The notes under the pieces are model-generated. The model was not told where the DNA came from, searched no databases, and saw only the letters and a program-made list of their open reading frames with translations. This document shows, one piece after another, positions 2,501 to 63,221 of a stretch of DNA of 64,000 bases (within the stretch, counting starts at the first letter, position 1; every line of letters starts with the position of its first letter). Both the position numbers and the translations under genes were made by a program. Location of the stretch: the sequence record OR050627.1; one strand, given 5' to 3'.

Positions 2501-5500
2501 ATGAACAACACACAGAACTTAGGTTTTCTTGTCGAAAATCATGTTTCGCATAACGTCTTCAAAAGAATTGACGAATCTGTTGCGTTACCAGACGGAGTTC
2601 TGATGCTTATGCGAGGTACGTTTATTCCTATGGACGTTCCTGGTGAAAACGGCCGATGGTACACTTACGCTGACTATGCACCGCAGGTAGAAATGTTACT
2701 ACCTAAAATTGCTAGAAAGGAATGTTTTGGAGAAATTGAACACCCTCAAAGAGTTCACGTTCCTTACGACTTAGCGTCTCACAGAGTTGAGGAAGTTTAC
2801 TACGACAAAGCATCAAATTCTTGGATTGGCACTATAGCAATTTTAGATACTGAAAAGGGTAGAGCAGTCTATGACATCGCCAAAACTGGAGCGCCTATAT
2901 ACGTTTCGCATAGAGCATTAGGTTCAGTTGACCAAAAGACAGGTAAAGGAATTCTACTTAAATTGTTGACTTGGGACGTTACTTCCAATCCATCATTTAA
3001 AGCTGCAGAATTTTCAAGAGCCGAACTTATCAATGAATCTGCTTACGTTTACTTGCCACTAGAAGGCGAAATGCTTAACGAATGCTATGCTGAACTTGGT
3101 TTAACTGCAGAAGACTTTATTAATGAATCTACTGTTACGTTAACGCAAAACGAATTGTTAGCTATGCTTAACGAAGCTGCTAACAATGCAAATGCTTTAG
3201 CTACTGAACGTTACGCAAAGCTTTTAGCTAACGCAATAAACGTAACTGACAATTTTGTTAATGAGCATATTGCGGTTCAGCCATCACAAGTAATTGACGT
3301 AGTTAAGAAAATTAAAGAACGTCCTTGGATGACTGCACAGGAAATGCTTGACCCGGAATTCAAATTTAACGATGAATATATGCATCCTTTAGATTTAATT
3401 GCTGCTATGCAAGCACTTGCTAGTGAAGGAATGCTGTATGACGAAGATGCTCCTGGCTTTGATGAAAAAGAACCTCAAGTAGCATCTATAATTGCAATAC
3501 CTCAACTAGAGGACGTAATTGCTAATTGGCAAATGGAACAGGATGCTTTAGCTGCAGATGCTATTGCCGCCGAAGAAGCTAAAGCTGCTAAATATGCAAA
3601 CGAATCTGCAGACTTCGTAAATAATTTTGCATCTGAATATGCTTTTGTAGGTCCTTATGAAGCTACTAAACAGGCAGTTGCTGCATTAACTGGTAAAGCT
3701 ATTTGCGATCTTTCAGAATCTGTAGAGGCTAGAATTTCTGACATCATGGTTAACGCCAAACCTGGTAATGCAGAAGAGATTATAAATGCTTTAGTCGATG
3801 CAGATTTGTACGCTAATGAAGCTTTGGCAGCTGCTAGCGATCCTAGCAAAAATAAACAAATGCTACAAATTTTAGTTAACTTTACAAAATATGTTGAACT
3901 AAAATTACATGTATTCCATCACAACACTAAAAGCTTTTCACAGCATAAAGCTTTCGATACTGCATACAAAAGCTTCCAAAAGCTAACTGATAGCATAATT
4001 GAACAAGCTATGGGATATAGCGGCGAACGTTACGATAGCATCGACCTTTCAGTTTCTATGCCAATTGTATATGCCGACGATTCTGGCGCAGATGTTATCG
4101 AATCACTTTATTCATTGTCAAAAGTTATCAAACTAATTTCTGAGGATTGGATTGCAGGAGGACTTTCTACGCTATCCGATGATGTTTCAGGAATTGCTGC
4201 TCAGCTTTCTTACTTAATGACGTTAAACGAATCTAAGCTTGACGAATTTGCTAATGAGGGCGTTGCTAGCTGGCTTAAAGATAAGTGGTCTAGGCTTAAA
4301 CGTTGGGCTAACTCAAATATGGATGCTACTGTAACTATTGATGGAGTAGACTACGTTATCGACGACATTCAGGAAGACGACAAAGTAATTTGCAGAGACT
4401 CCGATGGCAGAGCCAAAGAATTTACCTTCGATGAGGTTTATAAATACTTAAACGAAAACAACATATTACAACCACAAACAATGGCAAATACACACATTAA
4501 TGAGGGCGTTGACGAAGCAAAAGCAAACGTTCTAGCTATTCTTTCAGGAGCAAAATTTGTAAGCTCTGCAGATAGCGCAACAGATTATGATTTTTCAATT
4601 GAGGACGATGGTATTATTGCAGCTTCTGATGAAGTAGCTTTGGATATACTGACTGTTCTTAAAAATAACGCAGTCACTGCTTCCGTAGATGGCGCTAAAG
4701 TAAACATAACTTTCGGAATTGTTCCTGCAGTAGTTACTGACCAAATTAACGAATCTTTGGAGGACTTCTGCCAGAAAATGCTAACTTATGCTAACGAATC
4801 TGGTGTAGCGGAACACATTATTAACGCTGCTACTGCAATTCAGAACATTAACTGTGTAACTAATATAAACGAATCTTACGTTACTTACTGCGAACAAATT
4901 TTAGAATTTGCTAACGAATCCGGTGTAGCTTCTGACATTGCTAACGCTAATGCATTGTTACAAGGTGCTTTATCAGTAAAATTTGCTAACGAAGCTGACG
5001 AAACAGCAGCAATTGTATCTGATGCTACTATCGCTGGAGATGTTGCAGTTGATGACGTTAACGCAAGATATGCTGTAGGATGTACATTCTCAGTAGATTC
5101 TCAAAATTTCATAGTTGCTGAATTTGACGGTACTAACGTAGTAACTACTACTGGTGAAACTTTCACTGTAGCTGAATTGAAAAAAGAAGATGACGCTCCA
5201 ATTCCTGGAACTGATGATGCTTTAGAACCTGGTGCTGCTGTAGAAGGCGATAATGATGTTGATATGACTGTAACTCATGTAGGAACTATCGGTTCAATTG
5301 CAATTAATGAATCAGCATATAGCAAAACAAACAAACCAAAAATTGGCGATAAAGTTACTTTCATCATGGATAACCCAGATGGTCCTGGATTCGGAGGAAT
5401 TAAAAATGGCAAAAAAGTTACCGCTACTGTTTCAGATTTTGGCGACTGGGAAGGTGATGGTTATTCACTTGACGTAGTACTTACTGGTGTTTCTGAGGAA

Positions 5501-6544
5501 TACAGCGTTTACACTACTGAACTTATAAATGAAAGCGCTACTAAACCTAAAGTTGGCGACAAAGTTAAAGGTTCAAAAGATTTAACTGCAGGTAAAATTG
5601 GTACAGTTACTGAACTTGGTATGAATCAAGCTACAGTAGACTTCGGTAATGGAAACGCTTATGGAATTTCTTATGAAAGATTCGGTAATGAATTTACTTT
5701 CGTTAATGAATCTTTAAAGTATAAAGTCGAAGATTTTATTTCTGATGTAACTTACAGAGATGGCGTTGGTTATATTGATTTTGGTAGTGAAGTTAAATTC
5801 TCTGGATCAGGCAAAACTTTAACTGTTACTATTGCAGATGACGTTAATAAAAATAAAATTGTCAAGGCTATGGACGCTTATATTAAACAAAATGGCGGAA
5901 AATCTAATGGCTTAGTGTATACATTAAATGAAGCTGCCGAGGATTTAACTGATTTACCTAGCGGAACTGCAGAGAACATTGACCACAAAGTTATCGAGGA
6001 TGGTAATGAAACTAACATTCCAAACAACCTTGATAAGCCGCTAGAAAACAAATTGGCTGAGGACTTCCTTGCTAGAGCAGACAAAGCTGTAACGTTCGAG
6101 CAATGGATCGTTGACCAGGCTGCTTCAAATGACTTAGTAACTCCTCAATTAGTAATGACTGTGAAAACTATTATTTCTGATATGGAAGTTAAGCAAATGA
6201 TTAACGAATCTGCCGTGCTTACTGCAGCATTTATTAACGAATCTGCCGAAGCTACTGAACAATCTAAGCACTTAAAGCTTATTGGCGACCACATTGGACA
6301 ATCTCACAAATATATGTTTGAACACTTGAACGAATCTGCAAAAGGAGTTCTAGTTGCTCAAGCTGAATTGTATAATTTGTCTAGCCAAAATATCCACGAC
6401 TTCCTTGATACAAGAAACTGGGCCCAAATCGCTAATACTACAATTAACGAATCAGTCGCTCAAATTTCTGCAAATATTCAACAAAACGACTGGAAAGCTG
6501 CGCTTAAAGCATCTTTCAGAGCAGGTAGATATCAAACAATTTAA
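2501..6544 (+). CDS. gp21: Prohead protease (T4 gp21-like) fused to a long scaffold/cargo polyprotein
   Basis: First ~190 aa carry GENGRWY, FGEIEHP (His), YVSHRALGSV (Ser) and TWDVTSNPSF. The remainder is acidic with 21 [ILVA]NE[SAG] motifs, a Dps-like segment and two KOW/SH3-like segments. Confidence 0.88.
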   Translation: MNNTQNLGFLVENHVSHNVFKRIDESVALPDGVLMLMRGTFIPMDVPGENGRWYTYADYAPQVEMLLPKIARKECFGEIEHPQRVHVPYDLASHRVEEVYYDKASNSWIGTIAILDTEKGRAVYDIAKTGAPIYVSHRALGSVDQKTGKGILLKLLTWDVTSNPSFKAAEFSRAELINESAYVYLPLEGEMLNECYAELGLTAEDFINESTVTLTQNELLAMLNEAANNANALATERYAKLLANAINVTDNFVNEHIAVQPSQVIDVVKKIKERPWMTAQEMLDPEFKFNDEYMHPLDLIAAMQALASEGMLYDEDAPGFDEKEPQVASIIAIPQLEDVIANWQMEQDALAADAIAAEEAKAAKYANESADFVNNFASEYAFVGPYEATKQAVAALTGKAICDLSESVEARISDIMVNAKPGNAEEIINALVDADLYANEALAAASDPSKNKQMLQILVNFTKYVELKLHVFHHNTKSFSQHKAFDTAYKSFQKLTDSIIEQAMGYSGERYDSIDLSVSMPIVYADDSGADVIESLYSLSKVIKLISEDWIAGGLSTLSDDVSGIAAQLSYLMTLNESKLDEFANEGVASWLKDKWSRLKRWANSNMDATVTIDGVDYVIDDIQEDDKVICRDSDGRAKEFTFDEVYKYLNENNILQPQTMANTHINEGVDEAKANVLAILSGAKFVSSADSATDYDFSIEDDGIIAASDEVALDILTVLKNNAVTASVDGAKVNITFGIVPAVVTDQINESLEDFCQKMLTYANESGVAEHIINAATAIQNINCVTNINESYVTYCEQILEFANESGVASDIANANALLQGALSVKFANEADETAAIVSDATIAGDVAVDDVNARYAVGCTFSVDSQNFIVAEFDGTNVVTTTGETFTVAELKKEDDAPIPGTDDALEPGAAVEGDNDVDMTVTHVGTIGSIAINESAYSKTNKPKIGDKVTFIMDNPDGPGFGGIKNGKKVTATVSDFGDWEGDGYSLDVVLTGVSEEYSVYTTELINESATKPKVGDKVKGSKDLTAGKIGTVTELGMNQATVDFGNGNAYGISYERFGNEFTFVNESLKYKVEDFISDVTYRDGVGYIDFGSEVKFSGSGKTLTVTIADDVNKNKIVKAMDAYIKQNGGKSNGLVYTLNEAAEDLTDLPSGTAENIDHKVIEDGNETNIPNNLDKPLENKLAEDFLARADKAVTFEQWIVDQAASNDLVTPQLVMTVKTIISDMEVKQMINESAVLTAAFINESAEATEQSKHLKLIGDHIGQSHKYMFEHLNESAKGVLVAQAELYNLSSQNIHDFLDTRNWAQIANTTINESVAQISANIQQNDWKAALKASFRAGRYQTI

Positions 6545-6714: not shown

Positions 6715-6722
6715 TATAAATA
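6715..6722 (+). promoter_or_regulatory. T4-type late promoter TATAAATA (capsid gene)
   Basis: Exact T4 gp55 late consensus 33 nt before the MCP ATG. Also exact at 43057 and 63214. Variants TATACATA at 2467, 26876, 32409 and 60121. Confidence 0.75.
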
Positions 6723-6754: not shown

Positions 6755-8476
6755 ATGCAAACATTATTTCCAAATGCTAACCAAGTTAGCAACATGGTAG
6801 ACAGATGGTCTGAATTTATTAACGAAGCAGCTCCTAAAGGTGGTAGTACTCTATCTGATGGTAAAAGAGCAATGATTGCTCAGGTTGCAGAATTCCATGC
6901 TCATGGTAAGGATATCGCAACTGGAGGATTCTTGAACGAATCTATCATCGGTACAAATATTATGTCAAACGGTGCTAACATGAACGGAATGGGTTCTATT
7001 ACTCTTCCTACTAACGTTAAAGCTGGATTTACTCAATTCAACCAACAAACTCCTGGTTCTGGTGATGTTCCTGTGACTGTGCTTTCAATGGCAATGTCAG
7101 TAGCTGCGACTACTATCGGTTTTGATTTGTTACCTACTATTCCAATTTATCAGCCTGCAGTAATGCTACAGTATGTAGATTACCTTTACGGTGGTGGTAA
7201 ACTTGATTCTGCTGATAACCCTCCTTTGATCGTTATGGCTAGAATCGAGGAACTTAGAGGACACCTTGATCTTAGACAAGGTTCTAAAGTTGCTATCCAC
7301 TCTGTTGCAGGTGATGCTACTTCTGGATGGACATTCGAGTTCGTTGGATTTACAAGATTAGAAGGGTATGCAACTTTAAAAGTTGACACTTTCGCTAACA
7401 AAGTAACTCCTGCATTAGGCACTCTTGCTTTAGTTGAATTTACTATTGATGGTGGCGCTCCTATGACTATTGCTCCTGCAGGAAATCCTAAATTAGAATT
7501 GGCTAGAGCGGTTGAAAACCACTTCTCAATGTTCACTGCTTACGGAAACCTTGATGGTGAAGGAGTTGATAGAGCTGAAGCTGAAAAGGGTACAAGATCA
7601 GTTATCGAAATGAGAACTTACTCTAAAGTAGTAAGAACTAAAGAACATGCTGTAGAAGGTATCGTTTCAAGACAACAAGCTAGAGATATCAAAGCTATGG
7701 GTCTTGATGCATTCCCTCAATTGAAAGTTGCAATGCAGAATGACATCTCTCAGTCATTAAACAAGGAAATCCTTATGAGAATGAGACAGATGGGTGTTTC
7801 TACACACTTAATGTTACAGAAATCTCAGGGAGTTAACTTGAACACTTACATTGACTTACCTGCTAACACTTCTAAGCCAATCGTACAGTTTAAAACTTCT
7901 CCACTTATCGACAAGAACGGAGTTAACCAAACTGCTAACTTCTTACCGGCGCCTAACTCTGAAACTAACTCGGCTGCTGAAAACCTTTGGACTAGACAAA
8001 GAAGAGTAACTTCTACCATCATCACTGGTGCTGCTCTAGTAGGACAGGCTTCTTTCCACGGTTCTGCTGATGCTGTAGTTGTTAACTCTCAGTTAATGGC
8101 TGCCATTAAGGAATCTGTTGGTTACCAACCAGCTACTATCGAGAACAAAATCTCTCAGTCTACAAAGGCTCTTTATTATGCAGGTACTATTTCTGACGTT
8201 GCAGTTTACTGTGACCCTAACATGAAATGGAACGATACTACTGCTATCTTGGCTAGAACAGGTAAAACTGATGACGGTCTAGATATTAACCAATTGGCAG
8301 AAGGGCTAGTTTTTCTTCCGTATGTCTTGAGTTCGGAAGTTGAAATTATCACTGAAGGAACTATGGGTCCTAAAGCGTTAATCGAAACTGTTTATGCTAT
8401 CGGTGAAATCGGTATCAGACCAGAACTTGCTTACTTAACTATCGTATTCGATAACGGATTTGGTAGATGGGCATAA
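6755..8476 (+). CDS. gp23: Major capsid protein, T4 gp23-like
   Basis: Start moved to ATG 6755, downstream of TATAAATA 6715-6722. Contains the gp23-type segments GFDLLPTIPIYQPAVMLQYVDYLY, SRQQARDIKAMGLDA and MQNDISQSLNKEIL. FINE/A (E24) and FLNE/S (E62) are predicted maturation sites. Confidence 0.92.
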   Translation: MQTLFPNANQVSNMVDRWSEFINEAAPKGGSTLSDGKRAMIAQVAEFHAHGKDIATGGFLNESIIGTNIMSNGANMNGMGSITLPTNVKAGFTQFNQQTPGSGDVPVTVLSMAMSVAATTIGFDLLPTIPIYQPAVMLQYVDYLYGGGKLDSADNPPLIVMARIEELRGHLDLRQGSKVAIHSVAGDATSGWTFEFVGFTRLEGYATLKVDTFANKVTPALGTLALVEFTIDGGAPMTIAPAGNPKLELARAVENHFSMFTAYGNLDGEGVDRAEAEKGTRSVIEMRTYSKVVRTKEHAVEGIVSRQQARDIKAMGLDAFPQLKVAMQNDISQSLNKEILMRMRQMGVSTHLMLQKSQGVNLNTYIDLPANTSKPIVQFKTSPLIDKNGVNQTANFLPAPNSETNSAAENLWTRQRRVTSTIITGAALVGQASFHGSADAVVVNSQLMAAIKESVGYQPATIENKISQSTKALYYAGTISDVAVYCDPNMKWNDTTAILARTGKTDDGLDINQLAEGLVFLPYVLSSEVEIITEGTMGPKALIETVYAIGEIGIRPELAYLTIVFDNGFGRWA

Positions 8477-8609: not shown

Positions 8610-10067
8610 ATGATTAAACGTAAAAGACTTACATATAGCGACGTTATAGCCGACTGCAAAAAGACACACGATAATTACTATGAATATGTAGATACTTCTG
8701 CAACTTGGTATAAGAAAACTGACAAACTTAGAATTATATGTCCAGTTCACGGAGAATTTGAACAATCTGGTAAAAATCATAGTAATGGCCAAGGATGTAC
8801 TAAATGCAAAAAGAACATGCAGTCATACGACCAAATTATGTCAAAAGTTTTAGAAGTTCATGCTAAACGAGGATATGCTTACGAAGATACTTCTGCAGAA
8901 TATACTGTGTCTACATCGTCTATGCTTAAAGCTAACTGTCATAAACATGGCAAATTTGAAGTCGGCGCGCATGCGCATAGTGTTGGCGTACTAGGCTGTC
9001 AAGGTTGTTATACTGATGATTTAGTTGAACGTCAAAGATATAGTAAAGATGAAATGCGCAATATTTGTACAGATATTTTGGCTAAACGAAACTTATCCAT
9101 TATAGACATTACTTTTTATGTCGATAAAGCAAATTCTAATTTTATAATAAATTGCCCTAAACATGGTAACTTTGAAAAGAACGCATATCAGATACTATTA
9201 AAACAAGGCTGCCCTAATTGTGTAGGTTACAACTCATCTAAAGCCGAAATATTTTTAAGAGATCATTTAGTCAGTAACGGAATTTTAGATGCTGTAGGAC
9301 GTAAACGTTTTAGACATCATGAAACTAATAAACTTTATGAAATTGACTTACAATCACCAAGCTTAAAAATTGGCATAGAATTTAACGGAATACATTGGCA
9401 TAGAGGTGAAATTTTTAAGCATAAGCATATGTTAAAAACTACAAGTCTAGACTATATGAACTGGCAGCTAATCCATATTTTCGAGGACGAATATCATACG
9501 AAGTTTAACTCAGTAATGTCAATGATTAATCATAAACATGGAGTCACTAAACAAAAAATTCATGCCAGGAAAACTAAGACTGCCCTAATTGACGAAGATA
9601 CTTATACACAATTCTGTAATGAAAATAGCGCACAAATTTTTGACAAACTAGCATTTAATTACGTCGGACTATATTTGGCTGAAACATTAGTTAGCGTAAT
9701 TGCTTATAACGTAGATAGCAAAGCTAACGTAAACATCATAAACATTGCAATGCTAAACAATCATACGATAATTGGTGGAGTTGGCAAATTAGTAGCTTAC
9801 ATAGAACGTTCAGAACGTCCGGCATCAATAACTGCTACGCTAAACAGGCAATTCTCAACTAAGCATAACGTTTTTGAAAAGTTAGGATTTGATTTTGTTG
9901 AATATACTGAACAAAATTTTATGTACAGTATACATAGTAGTACTAGGATTTTGCCAGAACACACGCCCATCGAACATCAAATAGATTACAACAAAGTCTG
10001 GGATGTCGGTAACATTATTATGAAAAAAGTGTTCAAATTATTTTCATATGTCATTTATTTTTCTTAA
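8610..10067 (+). mobile_element. Free-standing homing endonuclease: Zn-ribbon repeats + PD-(D/E)xK (DUF559/Vsr-like) nuclease + C-terminal GNAT-like domain
   Basis: Three I-x-C-x-x-HG-x-F...G-C-x-x-C repeats; YEIDLQSPSLKIGIEFNGIHWH; KIHARK. Inserted immediately after the capsid gene with its own promoter at 8581-8605. Confidence 0.75.
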
Positions 10068-10100: not shown

Positions 10101-10283
10101 ATGAAAAAGACATATTTACTTAAAGGCCATGACAATTTGTACTATTGCTTTGAACACTATAGCTACTGGCATAAACAAAAAGACCAGGCTAAAGTTTTCC
10201 ATTCAATGGAAGACGTAGAAACTACAATAATCGAAAATAACCTTCAAGACGTAGAAATTATAACACTTTATAGCAAGCAATAA
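10101..10283 (+). CDS. Hypothetical early protein
   Basis: 60 aa, A-rich leader, follows promoter 10048-10072. Confidence 0.6.
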   Translation: MKKTYLLKGHDNLYYCFEHYSYWHKQKDQAKVFHSMEDVETTIIENNLQDVEIITLYSKQ

Positions 10284-10287
10284 AATT

Positions 10288-10716
10288 ATGAACATAGCAA
10301 ACATACAAAGGGCAATAGATCACCTTAAGACTATACAGCCAGAACATTTTGATATGACAGCATATCGTGACGTTAGAGATCAGTATGAGCCACAATGCAA
10401 TTCTGTCGGCTGTATAGTTGGTCACTGTACTATACTAGATAATGACAATATTTACGCTAACTTCATTGAACGTAACGACACAATTATGTTCACTGAATGG
10501 TCTTGCAATTTCTTTGGCATTGGGCTACTAAGCAAAACATGGGACTATATGTTCTCTTGTACTTGGGCAGATGCGCCAAAAACTAACACTATCGAACATG
10601 CAATATATCGAATGGAACGTATAATTGCAGGCTACAAACCAGGTCAAATTGATGAAGAGTTTGCGTATGAAACTGGCTATACTGAGCTTGAACCTGGCTA
10701 TACTGACAATGACTAA
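10288..10716 (+). CDS. Hypothetical phage protein (FDM...CNSVGCIVGH family)
   Basis: 142 aa with a Cys/His motif seen in phage hypotheticals. Confidence 0.6.
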   Translation: MNIANIQRAIDHLKTIQPEHFDMTAYRDVRDQYEPQCNSVGCIVGHCTILDNDNIYANFIERNDTIMFTEWSCNFFGIGLLSKTWDYMFSCTWADAPKTNTIEHAIYRMERIIAGYKPGQIDEEFAYETGYTELEPGYTDND

Positions 10717-10744
10717 CTTTTATAAACCAATAAATTTTAAAACA

Positions 10745-11695
10745 ATGACAAACATCAACGCGACCGAAAGACTCATTGCAATTTTTGCAGATGTACACGA
10801 GCGAAACTTAAAAAATGTACAACGAACTTACGCTACATCAGAATATGATGCTAACGGAAGACCTTACAAAAGTAAAATTAACTACGTCTATGCAGTATTA
10901 AGCCAAGACGTTATGACATCTATGCTGGAGGATTCTAAAATTTATGACTATCCAGGATTTGAATTTACTATTCCGGTTACTGACTTAAGCAAGCTGCCTC
11001 AACGAACTGAACATTTTGCAGTTTACGTTTTAGCCGATGGCTCAGTTATTAACATTTACGTAGACTACAACCAAAAGCCTAATCAAATGGTTATGTACTC
11101 TGCAGAACAAGAATATGACTTTGACAGACTTAGAAACGGCAGCAGGTCAAACCCTACACTAGGCAAAGTTTATTCAAAAATGTATCACAAAATAGTAACT
11201 ACAACACCAGTTACTGATTACTTGGGCGTTATGCTTTATAGACATCTTAACAACTTAGAAAACGTGCATACTAAATTTTATATGCTAATTTCTAGCAATG
11301 CTGCAAAGTATTTGAAAGATGAGGCTGACTTAACTGACCAACTAATGCTAACAAAAATTTCGGAAATTAAACACAATAAGTCAAGATTTGGCGTGTTTAA
11401 GCCTAAATACGATGTTAGTGGATATGGTCGTAAATTCGCAAATATTCTCGAAAACCATGCAGAAATTCAACTAATAGAATGTCATGACAAAGAATCTTCT
11501 ATTAACCAAGCGCATGCATATCCTATGGCAGTAGTGCTTACTAAGTACGTTATGCATAACCGATTCGACCAGGAATTAACACATTCGCCTATGAATCCAA
11601 ATGACCATACGCCAAAATCGCTAACATCTGAATTGATTGAGGATATTTTACAGCATTCTATAAAGCAACAAAACAAAGTTTTTTTAAAAAACTGA
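10745..11695 (+). CDS. Hypothetical protein, possibly two degenerate gp23 A-domain-like repeats
   Basis: Likely start ATG 10745 (leader ttttaaaaca). YVYAVLSQDVMTSM...INIYVDYNQKPNQMVM and FYMLISSNAAKYL...RKFANILENHAEIQLIE resemble the gp23 A-domain pattern. Confidence 0.4.
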   Translation: MTNINATERLIAIFADVHERNLKNVQRTYATSEYDANGRPYKSKINYVYAVLSQDVMTSMLEDSKIYDYPGFEFTIPVTDLSKLPQRTEHFAVYVLADGSVINIYVDYNQKPNQMVMYSAEQEYDFDRLRNGSRSNPTLGKVYSKMYHKIVTTTPVTDYLGVMLYRHLNNLENVHTKFYMLISSNAAKYLKDEADLTDQLMLTKISEIKHNKSRFGVFKPKYDVSGYGRKFANILENHAEIQLIECHDKESSINQAHAYPMAVVLTKYVMHNRFDQELTHSPMNPNDHTPKSLTSELIEDILQHSIKQQNKVFLKN

Positions 11696-11741
11696 CTAAA
11701 ATATGCAAAGCAAGTAAAACTTTATGGTTTTATATTTTCAC

Positions 11742-11766
11742 GTTTCAAAAATTTTTCTTATATTTG
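11742..11766 (+). promoter_or_regulatory. Bacteroidota-type early promoter (TATATTTG)
   Basis: TAnnTTTG at 11759-11766 upstream of the truncated MCP paralog. Confidence 0.75.
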
Positions 11767-11793
11767 TAATACAAAATAACACATAACAAAACA

Positions 11794-12528
11794 ATGCAAA
11801 ACAAACCAATCTTAACAAGAGACCAAAAGCTAGCAATCCTAGGAGATAACCCACATAACTGGGACGTAGACAACTTGGAAATTGTACAAGACATTGCAAT
11901 TACTAACGAATTTGTGCATCAGGCTAACGAAGCTAACTACAAAACTTTGCTAGGCTTAGGCTGGACAAACCACTACACAATTAACTTGCTAGACAAAATT
12001 AACATCAACTATTTTATTGCTACTCCGGAAGTTTCAGGAAAACCTTCAAGTGACTTCAAAATTTCAATGAGGAATCACTTTGACCAGGATGTTTCAGAAG
12101 ACTTAGGCACTACACCAAATGCAGAAGCTGGAACTGGCTTAGCTAACCTGTGGACTAGGCAAAACGCTTTAGTTGCACACTTATTTAGAGCGTCAAGCAT
12201 TATGAATACTATGTACGGTAACTTTGGCAAGACAATAATCGTAAACACGCATCTTGCTGCAGCTATAAAAAGTACAAATTTATTCAAGCCTACGCCAATT
12301 GAGGAATTGGTTGAAACTTCTACATCTACTATGCCGTACGTTGCAGGAACAATTACTACTGAAGATGGCAAAATGTCACTGAAAGTTGTTGTTAATCCTC
12401 AGCAACCTTGGGCAGACACTACGGCAATCCTGCATGATGGTGAATTTGACTTTCAGACAATTGACATGGAGGATGGCTTAACTTCAATTTCATTCGCATT
12501 TAACAATGACATTGGCCCATGGGCATAG
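11794..12528 (+). CDS. Truncated major-capsid-protein paralog (A-domain region only)
   Basis: ANLWTRQNAL / IIVNTHLAAAIKS / YVAGTI / NPQQPWADTTAIL / FNNDIGPWA align by eye to MCP ENLWTRQRRV / VVVNSQLMAAIKE / YYAGTI / DPNMKWNDTTAIL / FDNGFGRWA. Confidence 0.85.
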   Translation: MQNKPILTRDQKLAILGDNPHNWDVDNLEIVQDIAITNEFVHQANEANYKTLLGLGWTNHYTINLLDKININYFIATPEVSGKPSSDFKISMRNHFDQDVSEDLGTTPNAEAGTGLANLWTRQNALVAHLFRASSIMNTMYGNFGKTIIVNTHLAAAIKSTNLFKPTPIEELVETSTSTMPYVAGTITTEDGKMSLKVVVNPQQPWADTTAILHDGEFDFQTIDMEDGLTSISFAFNNDIGPWA

Positions 12529-12701
12529 AATTAACATCAGAAGAAAAGAAGGCGTATATCCAGTCAAAAGGCTGGACTACCCTTTGGCATAACAATTACT
12601 GGGTGCATTCAGGAATCATGGCAGGCGCTAATTTAGACTATTGCGGAATAGACTTAGAATCTGCATACAAATGCCAATTAAAACACGAACAACAAAATTA
12701 A
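12519..12701 (+). CDS. Hypothetical protein
   Basis: 60 aa, overlaps the upstream stop by 10 nt. Confidence 0.55.
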   Translation: MGIELTSEEKKAYIQSKGWTTLWHNNYWVHSGIMAGANLDYCGIDLESAYKCQLKHEQQN

Positions 12702-12720: not shown

Positions 12721-13134
12721 ATGAAACAAAGACTTACAAAACTATTAACTTTTACATTCGTACTTATCACATTACTTTCACTACAATCATGCTGGGAATG
12801 GTCCAGGCAACAAAAAATCAAAGACGCAGAGGCTCATGGTATCGCAACTTTGAAAGAATCCGAATCTTCCAAGAAAGCTATGGTTGAACAAGCTAAAGCT
12901 GAAAACCAGGCATCTACACTTAAGGCTGAAGCTATGGTTAAAATTGCAAAAGCTCAAGCAGATGCCGAAATTGAAAGGGCTAAAGGCGTCGCTAAAGCAA
13001 ATGAAATTATCGGCAATTCGCTTAAAGGAAATTCTGAATACTTGAAGTACTTGCAAATTGATGCAATTAAGGAATCTAAAGGCGCCAAGGTTTACATTCC
13101 TACTGAGGCTGGACTTCCAATCATAGAAAAATAG
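12721..13134 (+). CDS. Membrane-anchored SPFH/band-7-tail-like protein
   Basis: N-terminal hydrophobic segment ending LQSC, an AEA-rich coiled coil, and C-terminal YLKYLQI...VYIPTEAGLPI typical of phage band-7-related proteins. Confidence 0.6.
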   Translation: MKQRLTKLLTFTFVLITLLSLQSCWEWSRQQKIKDAEAHGIATLKESESSKKAMVEQAKAENQASTLKAEAMVKIAKAQADAEIERAKGVAKANEIIGNSLKGNSEYLKYLQIDAIKESKGAKVYIPTEAGLPIIEK

Positions 13135-13158: not shown

Positions 13159-13190
13159 AATCCCAAGTGCCTAGTGTACTTGGGATTTTT
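13159..13190 (+). terminator. Intrinsic terminator
   Basis: aatcccaagt/acttgggatt; related element at 59708-59740. Confidence 0.8.
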
Positions 13191-13247
13191 GTGCATCTTA
13201 ACATTGCTTTGCACTAATATATACTTTATCAAACAAATTATTAAACT

Positions 13248-13478: not shown

Positions 13479-13622
13479 CTCTGACGTTCTGCTTCTTGCA
13501 ACTTTGTCATGTGTATTTACAAAGGCGCATACTAAATTTAGTAGGCGCCTTTGTTGTGTTAAAAATTAACTTAATTTTATACCTTTGGCAATAACTTTTT
13601 ATTAAAAGTTTAACGTTTTAAA

Positions 13623-13654
13623 TTTTCATATGTCAAATAATTGTTATATATTTG
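13623..13654 (+). promoter_or_regulatory. Early/middle promoter TTTTCATATGTC-N12-TATATTTG
   Basis: Motif family member with fixed spacing. Confidence 0.8.
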
Positions 13655-13674
13655 TAATAACAAATTAAAATAAA

Positions 13675-14720: not shown

Positions 14721-15089
14721 ATGTTCACAATAAAATTACTTCAAGAAGCTTCAAAACTACAAAATGCTAACGATCCTAACGAAAGATTAATAGCAGTAGT
14801 ATCACAACTAACCCCGCAACAATATGTTGAGTTGCTTAGCGAAATTGATTTTGACGGCAATTATTCATTTGATGATGCTGGGCAGCTTTGGTTCTATGAT
14901 AAAATTGGTTATTATGACGAACCTAAGGTTAAAGTCGAAGACGCTAAGATTCCTACAAGCATGGTAATGTTTGTAGAACTTACGGATGAGTTACTTACTA
15001 CATTCGTAGAAATTTTGTATAGTTTAATACAAACTTACAATTCAGGCTTCAATCACCCTTCAAGAAGACATTTAAAAATCGCAATTTAA
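14721..15089 (+). CDS. Hypothetical acidic protein
   Basis: 122 aa, A-rich leader. Confidence 0.6.
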   Translation: MFTIKLLQEASKLQNANDPNERLIAVVSQLTPQQYVELLSEIDFDGNYSFDDAGQLWFYDKIGYYDEPKVKVEDAKIPTSMVMFVELTDELLTTFVEILYSLIQTYNSGFNHPSRRHLKIAI

Positions 15090-15096
15090 AAATAGC

Positions 15097-15378
15097 ATGG
15101 CAGAACTTACATTTTCAGAAAAATACAAAGCTTTACTGGCAGAAGCGCAAAACAAACTAAACGTTTGGTGTAATGATAATATAAAGTCTAAAGGCTTAAA
15201 GTCTATAAAGCTTAAGCATGAGTTTATCGACAATGGTGATGTGGATTGGTATAATTATGACGAACTTACGTCAGATGGCGAATTACTATCAACTGAAGAA
15301 AGCTACACGTTATCAGTTGCTTCAGCAACTAACGTATTTGGATTCCTTGAACTTATTGACGAACTTACACAAAACTAA
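15097..15378 (+). CDS. Hypothetical acidic protein
   Basis: 93 aa, in an operon with its neighbours. Confidence 0.6.
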   Translation: MAELTFSEKYKALLAEAQNKLNVWCNDNIKSKGLKSIKLKHEFIDNGDVDWYNYDELTSDGELLSTEESYTLSVASATNVFGFLELIDELTQN

Positions 15379-17663: not shown

Positions 17664-17740
17664 TGTAGTAAAGATTTAAATGTTGTTATGTTGAATTATT
17701 TATCACAACTTGCTAAAAGTTTTTGCAAAAATGTTTTACG

Positions 17741-17765
17741 ATGTCAAATAAAAGTTATATATTTG
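17741..17765 (+). promoter_or_regulatory. Early/middle promoter ATGTC-N12-TATATTTG
   Basis: Motif family member. Confidence 0.8.
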
Positions 17766-17788
17766 TATTATAAAATAAAGATAAAACT

Positions 17789-22124: not shown

Positions 22125-22161
22125 GTACATTTCTTAAAAATTTATGTCAAACTATTTTAGC

Positions 22162-22186
22162 ATGTCGTAAATTTTGTTTATATTTG
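22162..22186 (+). promoter_or_regulatory. Early/middle promoter ATGTC-N12-TATATTTG
   Basis: Upstream of the NTP-transferase-kinase gene. Confidence 0.8.
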
Positions 22187-22219
22187 TACTAACAACAATA
22201 AAATACATCTACATATAAC

Positions 22220-24052: not shown

Positions 24053-26722
24053 ATGGCAAAATTTACAAAACTTGCTGGAGAAGTTGCTAAGCTTTACGAC
24101 GGTAAAGTTACTGGTAACACTATCAAATTTGACAGTGAGGACGACTTATTTAAAGCAGCTGATGAAATTGCTGATCAGTTTGCATTTACGATGGACCAGG
24201 ATAAACTGACCATTGAGTTCCTTAACGAAAACATCGACATTAAATTCCTTAAACAATTTGCATCTGCTATGGGCGTTAGCAAATTTACAAACGAATATGT
24301 CGGTAAACTTACTAAACAAATAGGTATTCAGCTTAATGAGACTGAAGTTGACACAGTTACTACATTACTAAACAAAGTAGAAAGTCCGGAATATCCTGAT
24401 GTTGCTAAAGTTGCAGCTGACCCAATGCAACAAATTGCAGATACAATTACAGCATCTACGTCAACAGGCGCTACATTAGACATTGTTGATGGCGAAAATT
24501 CTGCAAAGCAAATAGTTATTAGAACTGACGGCAAACTTATTGCAGCCACGCCTACTGACATCGTAGCAATCAATGAATCTGCTTACGTGCACTACGGAAT
24601 GCATCAACTTAATGAAAATGAGTACAACGCACTTAAAGCTTTGGCAGATGTTGAAGCTAAACGTAGATTCCTAACAAGCATGGGTATTCAAGACCTTGAC
24701 GCCGAATCAATTGCTAAGAACTTAGAGTTGCTTAAACCTCTACATCCTGACATGGATGCAAACGGACTACTTCCACTAAACGAAGCCAAAGTTGAAATTG
24801 AGGTTGGCGTTACTTACGCTAGCAAAGCTAATGATGCTTTGGAAGATGTTAAACATCTGTACAAAAAACTAAAGCAAAAAGCTTCAAACTCATGGGTTGT
24901 CAAAGACTATGACGTCAATGATATTGTAGAAACTTTAGAAAAAGCCGGAGTTCCTGCTAACGAAATTTACGTTAACGAGTCTACAAAAGACATGGACATA
25001 TACAACTTACAATCTAAAGTCGCGCTATTCTGTAAAAAGTCAGGACTTTCTGGAGCCGATGTACAAAAAGCTTTACTACTTGTTAACTTAGAAGCTAAAG
25101 AAGCTAAGCCTAATTTTAGCAAATACATTAACATCAAGGACAGTATGCTAAACGAATCTGCAGATGCTGAGGACGCTGAGGAAATGTTCGAACGTAAGAA
25201 CAAAGCTTACTCTAAGATGATTGAGCAAGATGGCTTAGCTAAAGAACTTTCAGAATTCCTTGCGTCTTTTGGCGAAAACACTAAAATTCCTAAGGATGGC
25301 TTAGTTGGTGAGTATGGCGAACTTTCTGCAGATTTGCAAGAAGGAATCAACAAATTCATGGAAGAGCGTGGTTATTTTGCTAATGAGTCTGACAGTACTA
25401 ACGAAGAAATTGAAAGTGTATACAAATTTGAGTCGATAAAAGATATTGAAGTTGCTGCAGCGGCTAAAGGATATGTTTGCAAAGGGCATTCAGGACAATC
25501 TGAGTCTTCTGACAAATACAAATTTGACATTCTAGCCAAAGGTGGCAAAAAATGTGCAATGGGTGTTTATGACAAAACTAAAAAGATTGCAATATTGGAT
25601 GTTAATGATGAACATAAAGGAACTTCATTACTTGAGGCTAAAATGATCAATGAGAGCGCAGGCATTGAAAACTTCTTTGCATCTATGGGCGCTACGTTCA
25701 GCAAAGAGTTACGTACAGATGGCACTTACAAATACCAAGTCACTGGCTTAGTAGGTTATGCTAATGAGGCTACTGAAGTGCCTAACACTGCCGATCTAAT
25801 TGCATTTGAGATTCTTAAACTATACGGAAACTTCAAAGAAGCTACAAGGCTTTCACGTTCAGTAGTTAAGCAAGCATTACGTAACGTTATTGACACGTTG
25901 AAAGTTGACGACTCTTGGTTAACTGACGAATCAAAGTTTATTTCGCTTTTTGAAGCTATCGACACTATGAGAGTAGACTTTGGCCTAATTGACGAATCAA
26001 TACCTCAGCAAGAAGCTAAAATTGCCGGAACTAAAGCTAAGATAGCAGAAATTAAATCAGAAGCTAAGGCTGCTTCAGCTAACGCATCTTCTAAAATTTC
26101 TACAGAAAAGGCTAAGCTTGCAAATGCTAAAGCTACTTTGAAAAACCTTAAAAAGTCAAAGTCGTTAAATGAATCTAAAGCACCTCAAGGTGTAGGCGGA
26201 AATGTTTACGTAGTACCAAACTCGTCTTTCCAAAATCCTTGGCTGACTCATAAACTTGAAACGTCACAAGGCATGAGAGGATATCAGTTTGCAAATCAAT
26301 TTAAGTCTAACATAGTTAACGCAGACATTATGGTTGACTATTATTTGCCTAAAGATGACAATGTTGTTAATGAAGTTGGTATGGATACGGAAGGAACTTC
26401 AAAACCGCAAAAATCTGAAATTATAGCTACGCCAGTTTCAATTTACATTAACGAAAACAACGTACTTTGTTTCAATGAAAATCCGATCCCTTCTGAAATT
26501 GCAGAAAACGGTCAAATTGGCTCAGTTGCACAATTCAAGGAATATGCTAAATACATTCTTGGAGGAGGCATTCCTGGTGCAGAATCTGCATGCGAAGAAG
26601 GCCCAGTAACTGAAGAGGATATTGCAAAAATTGACATTATTTGTGATGCATGCGGTGAAAACTATGGCGCTATGATGGGTAAATTTGATGATTATCTTAG
26701 TCAGAAAGCTTCCAATTGCTAA
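24053..26722 (+). CDS. Large acidic putative internal-head polyprotein
   Basis: 889 aa with 8 [ILVA]NE[SAG] motifs; late-like TATAAATC at 24019-24026. Confidence 0.65.
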   Translation: MAKFTKLAGEVAKLYDGKVTGNTIKFDSEDDLFKAADEIADQFAFTMDQDKLTIEFLNENIDIKFLKQFASAMGVSKFTNEYVGKLTKQIGIQLNETEVDTVTTLLNKVESPEYPDVAKVAADPMQQIADTITASTSTGATLDIVDGENSAKQIVIRTDGKLIAATPTDIVAINESAYVHYGMHQLNENEYNALKALADVEAKRRFLTSMGIQDLDAESIAKNLELLKPLHPDMDANGLLPLNEAKVEIEVGVTYASKANDALEDVKHLYKKLKQKASNSWVVKDYDVNDIVETLEKAGVPANEIYVNESTKDMDIYNLQSKVALFCKKSGLSGADVQKALLLVNLEAKEAKPNFSKYINIKDSMLNESADAEDAEEMFERKNKAYSKMIEQDGLAKELSEFLASFGENTKIPKDGLVGEYGELSADLQEGINKFMEERGYFANESDSTNEEIESVYKFESIKDIEVAAAAKGYVCKGHSGQSESSDKYKFDILAKGGKKCAMGVYDKTKKIAILDVNDEHKGTSLLEAKMINESAGIENFFASMGATFSKELRTDGTYKYQVTGLVGYANEATEVPNTADLIAFEILKLYGNFKEATRLSRSVVKQALRNVIDTLKVDDSWLTDESKFISLFEAIDTMRVDFGLIDESIPQQEAKIAGTKAKIAEIKSEAKAASANASSKISTEKAKLANAKATLKNLKKSKSLNESKAPQGVGGNVYVVPNSSFQNPWLTHKLETSQGMRGYQFANQFKSNIVNADIMVDYYLPKDDNVVNEVGMDTEGTSKPQKSEIIATPVSIYINENNVLCFNENPIPSEIAENGQIGSVAQFKEYAKYILGGGIPGAESACEEGPVTEEDIAKIDIICDACGENYGAMMGKFDDYLSQKASNC

Positions 26723-43056: not shown

Positions 43057-43064
43057 TATAAATA
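43057..43064 (+). promoter_or_regulatory. Late promoter TATAAATA (holin/spanin genes)
   Basis: Exact consensus in the intergenic gap. Confidence 0.65.
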
Positions 43065-54140: not shown

Positions 54141-54205
54141 AGTTGCATTAAAATTTTTACATGCCATAAATGTTTATGAAAAATTTAATAAATTTTTAAC
54201 ATTTT

Positions 54206-54240
54206 AAATTTTACTACGTAGTAAAATTTTAATATATTTG
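54206..54240 (+). promoter_or_regulatory. Topoisomerase promoter with a perfect 24-bp palindrome in the spacer
   Basis: AAATTTTACTACGTAGTAAAATTT at 54206-54229; TATATTTG at 54233-54240. Confidence 0.7.
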
Positions 54241-54274
54241 TATTATAAAATTAATCAAACAATAAAATTACATA

Positions 54275-56929: not shown

Positions 56930-57154
56930 ATGGACATTTTTTTAATTAAAGCAGCATATAAAGTCGGTTACGATAGCTTTGACAGCCATGTAATTGCAGC
57001 AAATTCCAAATTTGAAGTTGTAGAACTAGCAATTGATACATGCGCAGATGAAGGCGAGCATGCATGGTTAGTAACTAACGTAATACGCTTAGGTACTTAT
57101 GAAGGTAATAAAAGTGAACCTTTTGTTATAATTTCATCATTTAATGCAGGATAA
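56930..57154 (+). CDS. Hypothetical early protein
   Basis: Promoter 56860-56909. Confidence 0.6.
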   Translation: MDIFLIKAAYKVGYDSFDSHVIAANSKFEVVELAIDTCADEGEHAWLVTNVIRLGTYEGNKSEPFVIISSFNAG

Positions 57155-57163
57155 AATTTTCAC

Positions 57164-57188
57164 ATGTCAAATATTTTTCTTATATTTG
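57164..57188 (+). promoter_or_regulatory. Early/middle promoter ATGTC-N12-TATATTTG (topoisomerase medium subunit)
   Basis: Motif family member. Confidence 0.8.
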
Positions 57189-57260
57189 TATTATACAAAT
57201 GGTAATAATTACCATTTTTGAATTGGTCAACAACCTATAAATTATAACAATCAATAACAC

Positions 57261-63213: not shown

Positions 63214-63221
63214 TATAAATA
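63214..63221 (+). promoter_or_regulatory. Late promoter TATAAATA
   Basis: Exact consensus just after a terminator, 21 nt before the ATG. Confidence 0.7.

Follow-up and report, generated by a model that had tools for sequence, protein, structure and literature searches.

A shortened copy of a gp23-type major capsid protein behind a non-late promoter in Chryseobacterium phage MA9V-1: a candidate decoy for capsid sensors

Paralogs of a major capsid protein (MCP) are known as vertex proteins. In phage T4, gp24 is a second, diverged gp23-type copy encoded downstream of the MCP gene; its HK97 fold is complete, its gene is a late one, and it is present in the virion in stoichiometric amounts and conserved among T4-like phages. 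The Bacteroidota jumbo phages of the PAU/PTm1/pT24/Lak type have MCPs of PHROG 28442 (PF07068), each encoded at a single locus. A phage protein that competes with the trigger of a defence sensor has also been described, as DSAD1 reportedly counters DSR2 in this manner. To our knowledge, the known trigger-competing phage proteins are not homologs of the trigger, and a pruned copy of a trigger is undescribed. The MCP itself is sensed by defence receptors, including Avs7, Avs8, Avs10, Dsr1, CapRel, and Lit (PMC13581612). Avs7, Avs8, and Avs10 bind the capsomer-forming face of the MCP A-domain, and the Avs receptors act on newly synthesised MCP monomers (PMC13581612). Avs7 additionally touches the P-domain and the E-loop, and two lobes of the sensor clamp the MCP (PMC13581612). 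The convergence of several unrelated receptors on the A-domain face is a finding of 2026 (PMC13581612).

The locus described here lies in a window of 64,000 nucleotides (positions 124001-188000 of record OR050627.1) of Chryseobacterium phage MA9V-1, a 213.5-kb jumbo myovirus whose host is C. indologenes MA9; coordinates below are those of the window. The original prediction had read an open frame at 11794-12528 as a truncated, early-expressed copy of the phage's own MCP and a decoy candidate. The frame is real and corresponds to the annotated gene MA9V1_157 (ORF157). Like gp24, ORF157 is a second diverged gp23-type copy encoded downstream of the MCP gene, whereas it consists of a spine helix and an A-domain, has a promoter of a non-late class, and occurs in two phages only, MA9V-1 and MA9V-2. 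It is clearly homologous to the PAU/PTm1/pT24/Lak-type MCPs but is shorter by ~300 residues at the N-terminus and has no P-domain hairpin, and the two phages have two MCP-like loci instead of one. The receptors listed above are host proteins and no relatives of ORF157; the point of contact is that the target of Avs7, Avs8, and Avs10, the A-domain capsomer face, belongs to the domain that ORF157 keeps whole. The relevant genes are as follows.

423-2135: T4-type portal gene of the head-gene cluster
2501-6544: ORF151, a prohead-protease fusion of 1347 amino acids, head-gene cluster
6755-8476, plus strand: full-length gp23-type MCP, MA9V1_152, 573 amino acids (Pfam Gp23, E-value 1.6e-12; PHROG 28442, E-value 2e-98)
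8610-10067: HNH/homing-type endonuclease, immediately 3' of the MCP gene and also found in MA9V-2
11794-12528, plus strand: ORF157 (MA9V1_157), 244 amino acids, ATG start, annotated as "hypothetical protein"

The head-gene cluster is just upstream of ORF157, at a distance of 3.3 kb. Among the neighbouring genes, ORF155 (10288-10716) is one of five paralogs of ~140 amino acids in MA9V-1 (31-51% identity; the others at record positions 11716, 12204, 12668, and 22901) and has no family match. ORF156 (10745-11695) is a fast-evolving orphan of 316 amino acids, with 55% identity between the two phages and a dN/dS of 0.17.

The MCP MA9V1_152 was taken as the paralog for comparison. BLASTP aligned it to ORF157 with 26% identity over 215 columns (E-value 9e-20), and both proteins matched PHROG 28442, ORF157 with an E-value of 5.9e-13 at profile positions 359-534 of 604. 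The best viral match in a Foldseek search with the AF2 model of ORF157 was the pT24 MCP (E-value 1.5e-14, TM 0.73), and the top matches in the PDB were T4 gp23 and gp24 (1yue, 7vrt, and 5vf3; probability 0.99). Pfam Gp23 stayed below threshold on the ORF157 fragment; Terminase_3, the sole Pfam/NCBIfam match on this protein, was also sub-threshold and was taken as spurious. When ORF157 was aligned with 34 MCPs of the PHROG 28442-type family, homology began at about residue 7 (TRDQ, the family TRxQ motif) and reached the final residue, with the motifs NLWTRQ, VNxxLAAAIK, YxAGTI, WxDTTAIL, and a GxWA end common to ORF157 and the MCPs. The prediction that the C-terminal ~140 residues align with the MCP was thus correct as to homology but too narrow in extent, which is residues ~7-244. 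The C-terminal ending that it had pointed out is indeed held in common (FAFNNDIGPWA in ORF157 and IVFDNGFGRWA in the MCP), and both the homology and the fold were confirmed by pairwise and structural alignment.

The AF2 models of ORF157 (pLDDT 80.6, pTM 0.78) and the MCP (pLDDT 71.5) were compared. The counterpart of ORF157 in the MCP comprises residues ~304-520 plus 560-573, within the C-terminal 45% of the protein, while nothing in ORF157 corresponds to MCP residues 1-303 and ~521-559 in the alignment or the models. The start of ORF157 falls exactly after the E-loop hairpin of the MCP (strands 284-303) in the models. Two parts of the gene can be assigned.

11866-11994, plus strand: equivalent of the spine helix, codons 25-67, a 43-residue helix corresponding to MCP H319-358 (AF2 and alignment)
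11995-12525, plus strand: A-domain and C-terminal strand, codons 68-244, with helices 119-141 and 152-159 and a beta-sheet

An internal deletion of ~40 amino acids, which the earlier reading had overlooked, has its junction near codons 226-231 and removes the long P-domain beta-hairpin (MCP ~521-559); beyond it, the protein resumes with a final helix and a strand that returns to the A-domain. What ORF157 retains is therefore the spine helix together with the entire A-domain and the strand at the C-terminus, and it is without the propeptide, the N-arm, the insertion domain, the E-loop, and the P-domain beta-hairpin. The view of ORF157 as a truncated MCP paralog without N-arm and E-loop was supported by BLASTP, the alignment, and the models. 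The statement that most of the P-domain is missing holds for the beta-hairpin but not for the spine helix (H25-67), which is retained. As modelled, ORF157 is a cleanly cut-out module of spine helix and A-domain with two deletions, not a simple 5' truncation. In HK97-fold subunits, the N-arm, the E-loop, and the P-domain sheet link capsomers and overlap neighbouring subunits. Because these capsomer-linking elements are missing, ORF157 is predicted to be unable to serve as a regular shell subunit. The domain that it keeps makes up the central part of hexamers and pentamers.

The alignment and the AF2 models agree that a complete HK97 fold is absent, and this bears on whether ORF157 could be a gp24-like vertex (penton) protein, possibly a split one with ORF156 providing the N-terminal half. 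The summed length of ORF156 (316 amino acids) and ORF157 (244 amino acids) is roughly that of the MCP, and the vertex paralog of T4 is likewise encoded just downstream of gp23. However, a gp24-like protein would be a full-length, penton-forming paralog that is conserved across the capsid type, and ORF157 is neither. It has its own promoter and start, lacks the P-domain hairpin, is absent from relatives, and has no late motif. The gp24-like vertex protein that had been offered as an alternative is thus very unlikely in view of the truncated fold, the absence from relatives, and the promoter. The split form was rejected, as ORF156 showed no homology to the MCP or ORF157 (BLASTP E-value 0.24; hhalign probability 0.3%). 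BLASTP and hhalign both picked one weak, non-significant stretch, ORF156 49-117 against MCP A-domain residues 440-497 (E-value ~0.2).

ORF157 keeps 22 of the 43 positions that are conserved in at least 85% of the MCPs in the shared region, compared with an overall identity of 26%. The retention of exactly the capsomer-forming domain and of half of the family-invariant residues, together with the location 3.3 kb past the head genes, would suit an assembly modulator or chaperone whose target is the A-domain face of MCP monomers of the same phage, or a low-copy minor head component or capsomer plug. Such a protein may prevent premature or aberrant polymerisation of MCP monomers or shield their A-domain face. 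This assembly role is the main rival to the decoy reading; we consider it possible, although on balance unlikely, for reasons given below with the protease motif, the promoter, and the distribution of the gene.

The motif [ILVA]NE[SAG] is clearly meaningful in MA9V-1 as judged from its distribution: 21 matches were found in ORF151 (1347 amino acids), 8 in ORF179 (889 amino acids; 24053-26722), and 2 in the MCP, at N-terminal residues 22 and 60, as compared with 14 in the other ~16,700 residues. It looks like the cleavage code of the prohead protease, with a polyprotein-like scaffold. ORF157 had been described as having no such site, and this was incorrect in the literal sense, since one match, ANEA, is present at residues 44-47. 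The match would favour an assembly role as a putative prohead-protease site. However, it lies inside the spine helix, where it is conserved in MA9V-2, and from the 14 matches in ~16,700 other residues about 0.2 are expected for a protein of such length, so that the single match is compatible with chance.

The region upstream of ORF157 was compared with promoters of the whole genome, in which two classes of element are found.

11725-11780, plus strand: 56-nt promoter element of ORF157, comprising a -33-like TTTTCA (11735-11740) and, as its -7 box, TATATTTG (11759-11766)
6715-6722: late-type TATAAATA of the MCP gene

The 56-nt element occurs in 40 copies in MA9V-1, all on the plus strand and 26-91 nt upstream of ORF starts, and the copy of ORF157 (PWM score 59.5) is among the best. 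It is built of a -33-like TTTTCA, a core resembling ATGTCAAAT, and a -7 box of the TATATTTG or TTAAATTTA subclass. The TATATTTG box fits TAnnTTTG, the Bacteroidetes sigma-A consensus. This subclass also precedes the sigma factor MA9V1_023, the NAD-dependent DNA ligase 095, GlmU 178, the DNA-binding protein 211, and the topoisomerase II subunits B (212) and A (216), and no copy of the 56-nt element lies upstream of an annotated structural gene in the genome. In MA9V-2, the element of ORF157 is conserved near base for base, and the flank upstream has diverged. Further copies in the window are located at 13613-13668, 17724-17779, 22145-22200, 54199-54254, and 57147-57202. The second class is the motif TATA[ACT]A[TA]A, which resembles the T4 late TATAAATA and is found 27-48 nt upstream of structural genes, namely those of the tail sheath, the portal, the protease fusion, and the MCP, as well as several very large ORFs; none is present upstream of ORF157. 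Sites of the late-type motif are 6715-6722, 43057-43064, and 63214-63221, and late-type TATACATA/TATATAAA sites occur upstream of 423, 2501, 24053, 26903, and 32444. The predicted host-type TATATTTG promoter at 11759, in place of a late motif, was therefore supported by the sequence, and it belongs to the class of replication and metabolism genes.

From the promoter class, we infer that ORF157 is expressed at an early or middle time, not late, which argues against an assembly role. The strong conservation of the ATGTCAAAT-like core 5' of the -7 box hints at a dedicated factor besides the host sigma, and that of the element's upstream half may mean that a phage-specific (middle) factor is used instead of plain host sigma-A. 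The position of the sigma factor MA9V1_023, outside the window, behind an early-type element suggests a transcription cascade. The papers on MA9V-1 and MA9V-2 contain no transcriptome and no virion mass spectrometry, only unassigned SDS-PAGE. A role of ORF157 other than shell building is probable because of this non-late promoter and the strong selection described below.

ORF157 heads what appears to be a transcription unit of promoter, ORF157, ORF158, ORF159, and terminator, as judged from a stop/start overlap, a 20-nt gap, and the sole strong hairpin, which follows ORF159.

12519-12701, plus strand: ORF158, 60 amino acids, whose start overlaps the ORF157 stop (ATGGGCATAG)
12721-13134, plus strand: ORF159, 137 amino acids, last gene of the unit, 20 nt after ORF158, lipoprotein-like
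13159-13195, plus strand: intrinsic-terminator-like hairpin and U-tract (dG -19.1 kcal/mol, z -4.5, by folding)

Owing to the overlap, ORF157 and ORF158 are probably translationally coupled. ORF158 is an orphan of MA9V-1 and MA9V-2 with a dN/dS of 0.05. ORF159 matched PHROG 11227 (E-value 1.3e-30), PHROG 200 (lipoprotein), and prohibitin-2 (E-value 0.02); of the SPFH/prohibitin architecture, it has the coiled-coil tail alone, after a putative lipoprotein signal peptide (assigned by eye). Homologs were found in 109 phage records, with haloviruses, cyanophages, and jumbo phages among them; their annotations vary (protease, SPFH, and lipoprotein), and their hosts are bacteria and haloarchaea. The two partner genes indicate no particular pathway, capsid sensing included. 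The terminator hairpin (13159-13187) has perfectly complementary arms of 10 nt, with a 12-bp stem in the fold, and no other strong hairpin lies between 11700 and 13300. A generic sigma-70/terminator scan was uninformative for this Bacteroidota phage and missed the terminator, whose loop is above the limit of the scan.

The ortholog of ORF157 in MA9V-2 (OR513085.1) has equal length and 87.7% identity. By the Nei-Gojobori method, the pair has 73.7 synonymous and 35.3 non-synonymous differences (dN 0.064, dS 0.74), and the resulting dN/dS of 0.087 rests on one pairwise comparison of two closely related phages. The ratio is alike in each quarter of the gene, neighbouring genes range from 0.03 to 0.22, and a binomial test against neutrality gave a p value of 4.5e-25. 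The frame of 244 codons is intact, and the two phages agree in its length, start, stop overlap, and promoter. ORF157 appears to be under strong purifying selection in this one comparison, and the value near 1 expected for neutral evolution was not seen. The HNH endonuclease gene that directly follows the MCP gene and the truncation of the copy could have suggested a homing-endonuclease co-conversion relic, or a decaying partial duplication (pseudogene) as had been considered originally, but the low dN/dS in every quarter and the intact frame make either extremely improbable, as far as one pair allows.

The divergence between the two phages is strongly mosaic, as compared at 6755-8476, 10101-11695, and 14721-15378. 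Their MCPs are 99.1% identical, and ORF154-156, which adjoin ORF157, form a fast-diverging block with 55-72% amino acid identity; dS is 0.12 for the MCP and 1.4-2.4 for ORF154-156. ORF164 is base-identical and ORF163 differs by one non-synonymous base, both being without synonymous change. This mosaic pattern indicates recent recombination tracts.

The source of the copy was addressed by phylogeny. ORF157 is 24-28% identical to each MCP of the clade, and the ORF157 pair of MA9V-1 and MA9V-2 lies outside all MCPs, on a very long branch (~3.6 substitutions per site). The AU test did not reject the phage's own MCP as the sister group (p = 0.35), nor the clade of that MCP (p = 0.25). The phage's own MCP is thus a possible source, and the attribution to it in the original prediction goes beyond a tree that cannot place ORF157 and identities that are similar for all MCPs of the clade. 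A recombination cassette for MCP diversification was ruled out, because no nucleotide homology is left at 26% protein identity.

The very long branch and the replacement of many family-invariant residues are also what a neofunction unrelated to capsids and capsid sensing might leave, with the A-domain fold reused as a scaffold for another early role. The N-terminal 61 residues, in which a single substitution separates the two phages, could be a new binding element, and residues 1-40 were modelled with lower confidence (block-mean pLDDT 53-68). However, the complete A-domain was kept, including the distant C-terminal strand beyond a clean hairpin excision, which suggests selection on the domain as such. 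On these grounds we consider a neofunction rather unlikely.

The shortened form was searched for in several collections. In tblastn against 50,697 phage records, it was found solely in MA9V-1 and MA9V-2, and a word-indexed search of 5.8 billion clusters returned the same two phages as its 2 matches. HMMER against 1.84 billion representative proteins gave 10 matches (the MA9V-2 ortholog, seven full-length MCPs, and two short ones) with no further shortened form among them; the two short matches (347 and 228 amino acids) were rejected as MCP fragments on ~1-kb contigs. IMG/VR and the JGI metagenomes contained no ORF157 homolog of the shortened form. Among 31 phage records with this MCP family, including PAU, PTm1/5, pT24, the Lak phages, and MaF61, a second MCP-like locus was present only in MA9V-1 and MA9V-2. 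The two nearest relatives are metagenomic contigs (L006 and L007) with MCPs 75% and 71% identical to that of MA9V-1, and neither has ORF157, ORF158, or ORF159 between the MCP gene and the orf160 homolog (~2.5 kb after the MCP). Because the shortened form is limited to the two phages and the syntenic site of the relatives is without it, the 157-159 cassette appears to be a lineage-specific accessory. The absence of the gene at that site in these relatives, and of a second copy in the other phages of the MCP family, also implies that ORF157 is dispensable for the assembly of this capsid type, and this weighs against the assembly role.

A pre-late, lineage-specific, assembly-incompetent protein in a variable accessory region could in addition act as an inter-virus weapon that poisons, in a dominant-negative way, the capsomers of co-infecting phages or satellites with related MCPs and would spare the phage's own MCP by divergence. 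The MCPs of MA9V-1 and MA9V-2 are 99% identical, so that such a weapon would be unable to tell the known competitors apart; we regard this as quite unlikely.

ORF157 is best described, from its sequence, as a putatively functional, lineage-specific offshoot of a gp23-type MCP. The single most likely role among those considered is that of a decoy or sensor antagonist, to which we assign a probability of roughly 30%. In the specific form that we put forward tentatively, the phage's own capsid protein would have been carved down to the A-domain face gripped by the receptors and would be expressed before the MCP as a non-activating competitor. ORF157 would be produced before, or independently of, the capsid proteins and, being unable to tile into the shell, would act via its sole preserved surface, the capsomer-forming face of the A-domain. 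It would preload a candidate host receptor for newly made MCP monomers. Without the P-domain and E-loop contacts, it would occupy the sensor with no clamping or activation, and a capsid-triggered abortive defence would be blunted once the real MCP appears. An A-domain-only protein made ahead of the MCP is a plausible non-clamping competitor because Avs7 clamps via the P-domain and the E-loop as well, and preloading would be stoichiometrically feasible because sensors are scarce. The proposed logic is, by functional analogy only, like that of the DSAD1/DSR2 type, in that a protein present before the trigger would fill the ligand site of the sensor without activation.

Several points stand against the decoy reading. 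An early A-domain could equally be a trigger of the sensor. The MCP is in vast excess over any decoy late in infection, and a decoy would therefore need tight or inactivating binding. The co-transcribed orphan and mini-SPFH lipoprotein suggest no capsid-sensing pathway.

As far as we found, a selected, separately transcribed module of A-domain and spine helix that is shell-incompetent has no description in the literature. If the decoy reading is true, ORF157 would be the first anti-defence protein homologous to the trigger itself. Blocking of sensing by such a protein would represent a new route to anti-defence genes, in which the trigger is duplicated and then pruned, and would provide a search rule, namely truncated early copies of structural genes. 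If ORF157 instead binds its own MCP, it would regulate the assembly of large T4-like capsids and, as such a regulator, be of a new type. In both cases, it marks the smallest stable unit of a gp23-type A-domain.

The structural search also returned short BFVD matches of 190-250 amino acids, which are probably fragments of g23 amplicons. Two neighbouring BFVD accessions, A0A345MM72 (250 amino acids) and A0A345MM67 (328 amino acids), matched the ORF157 model with an MCP-like fold and could be another case of a shortened MCP in one genome, or just fragments.
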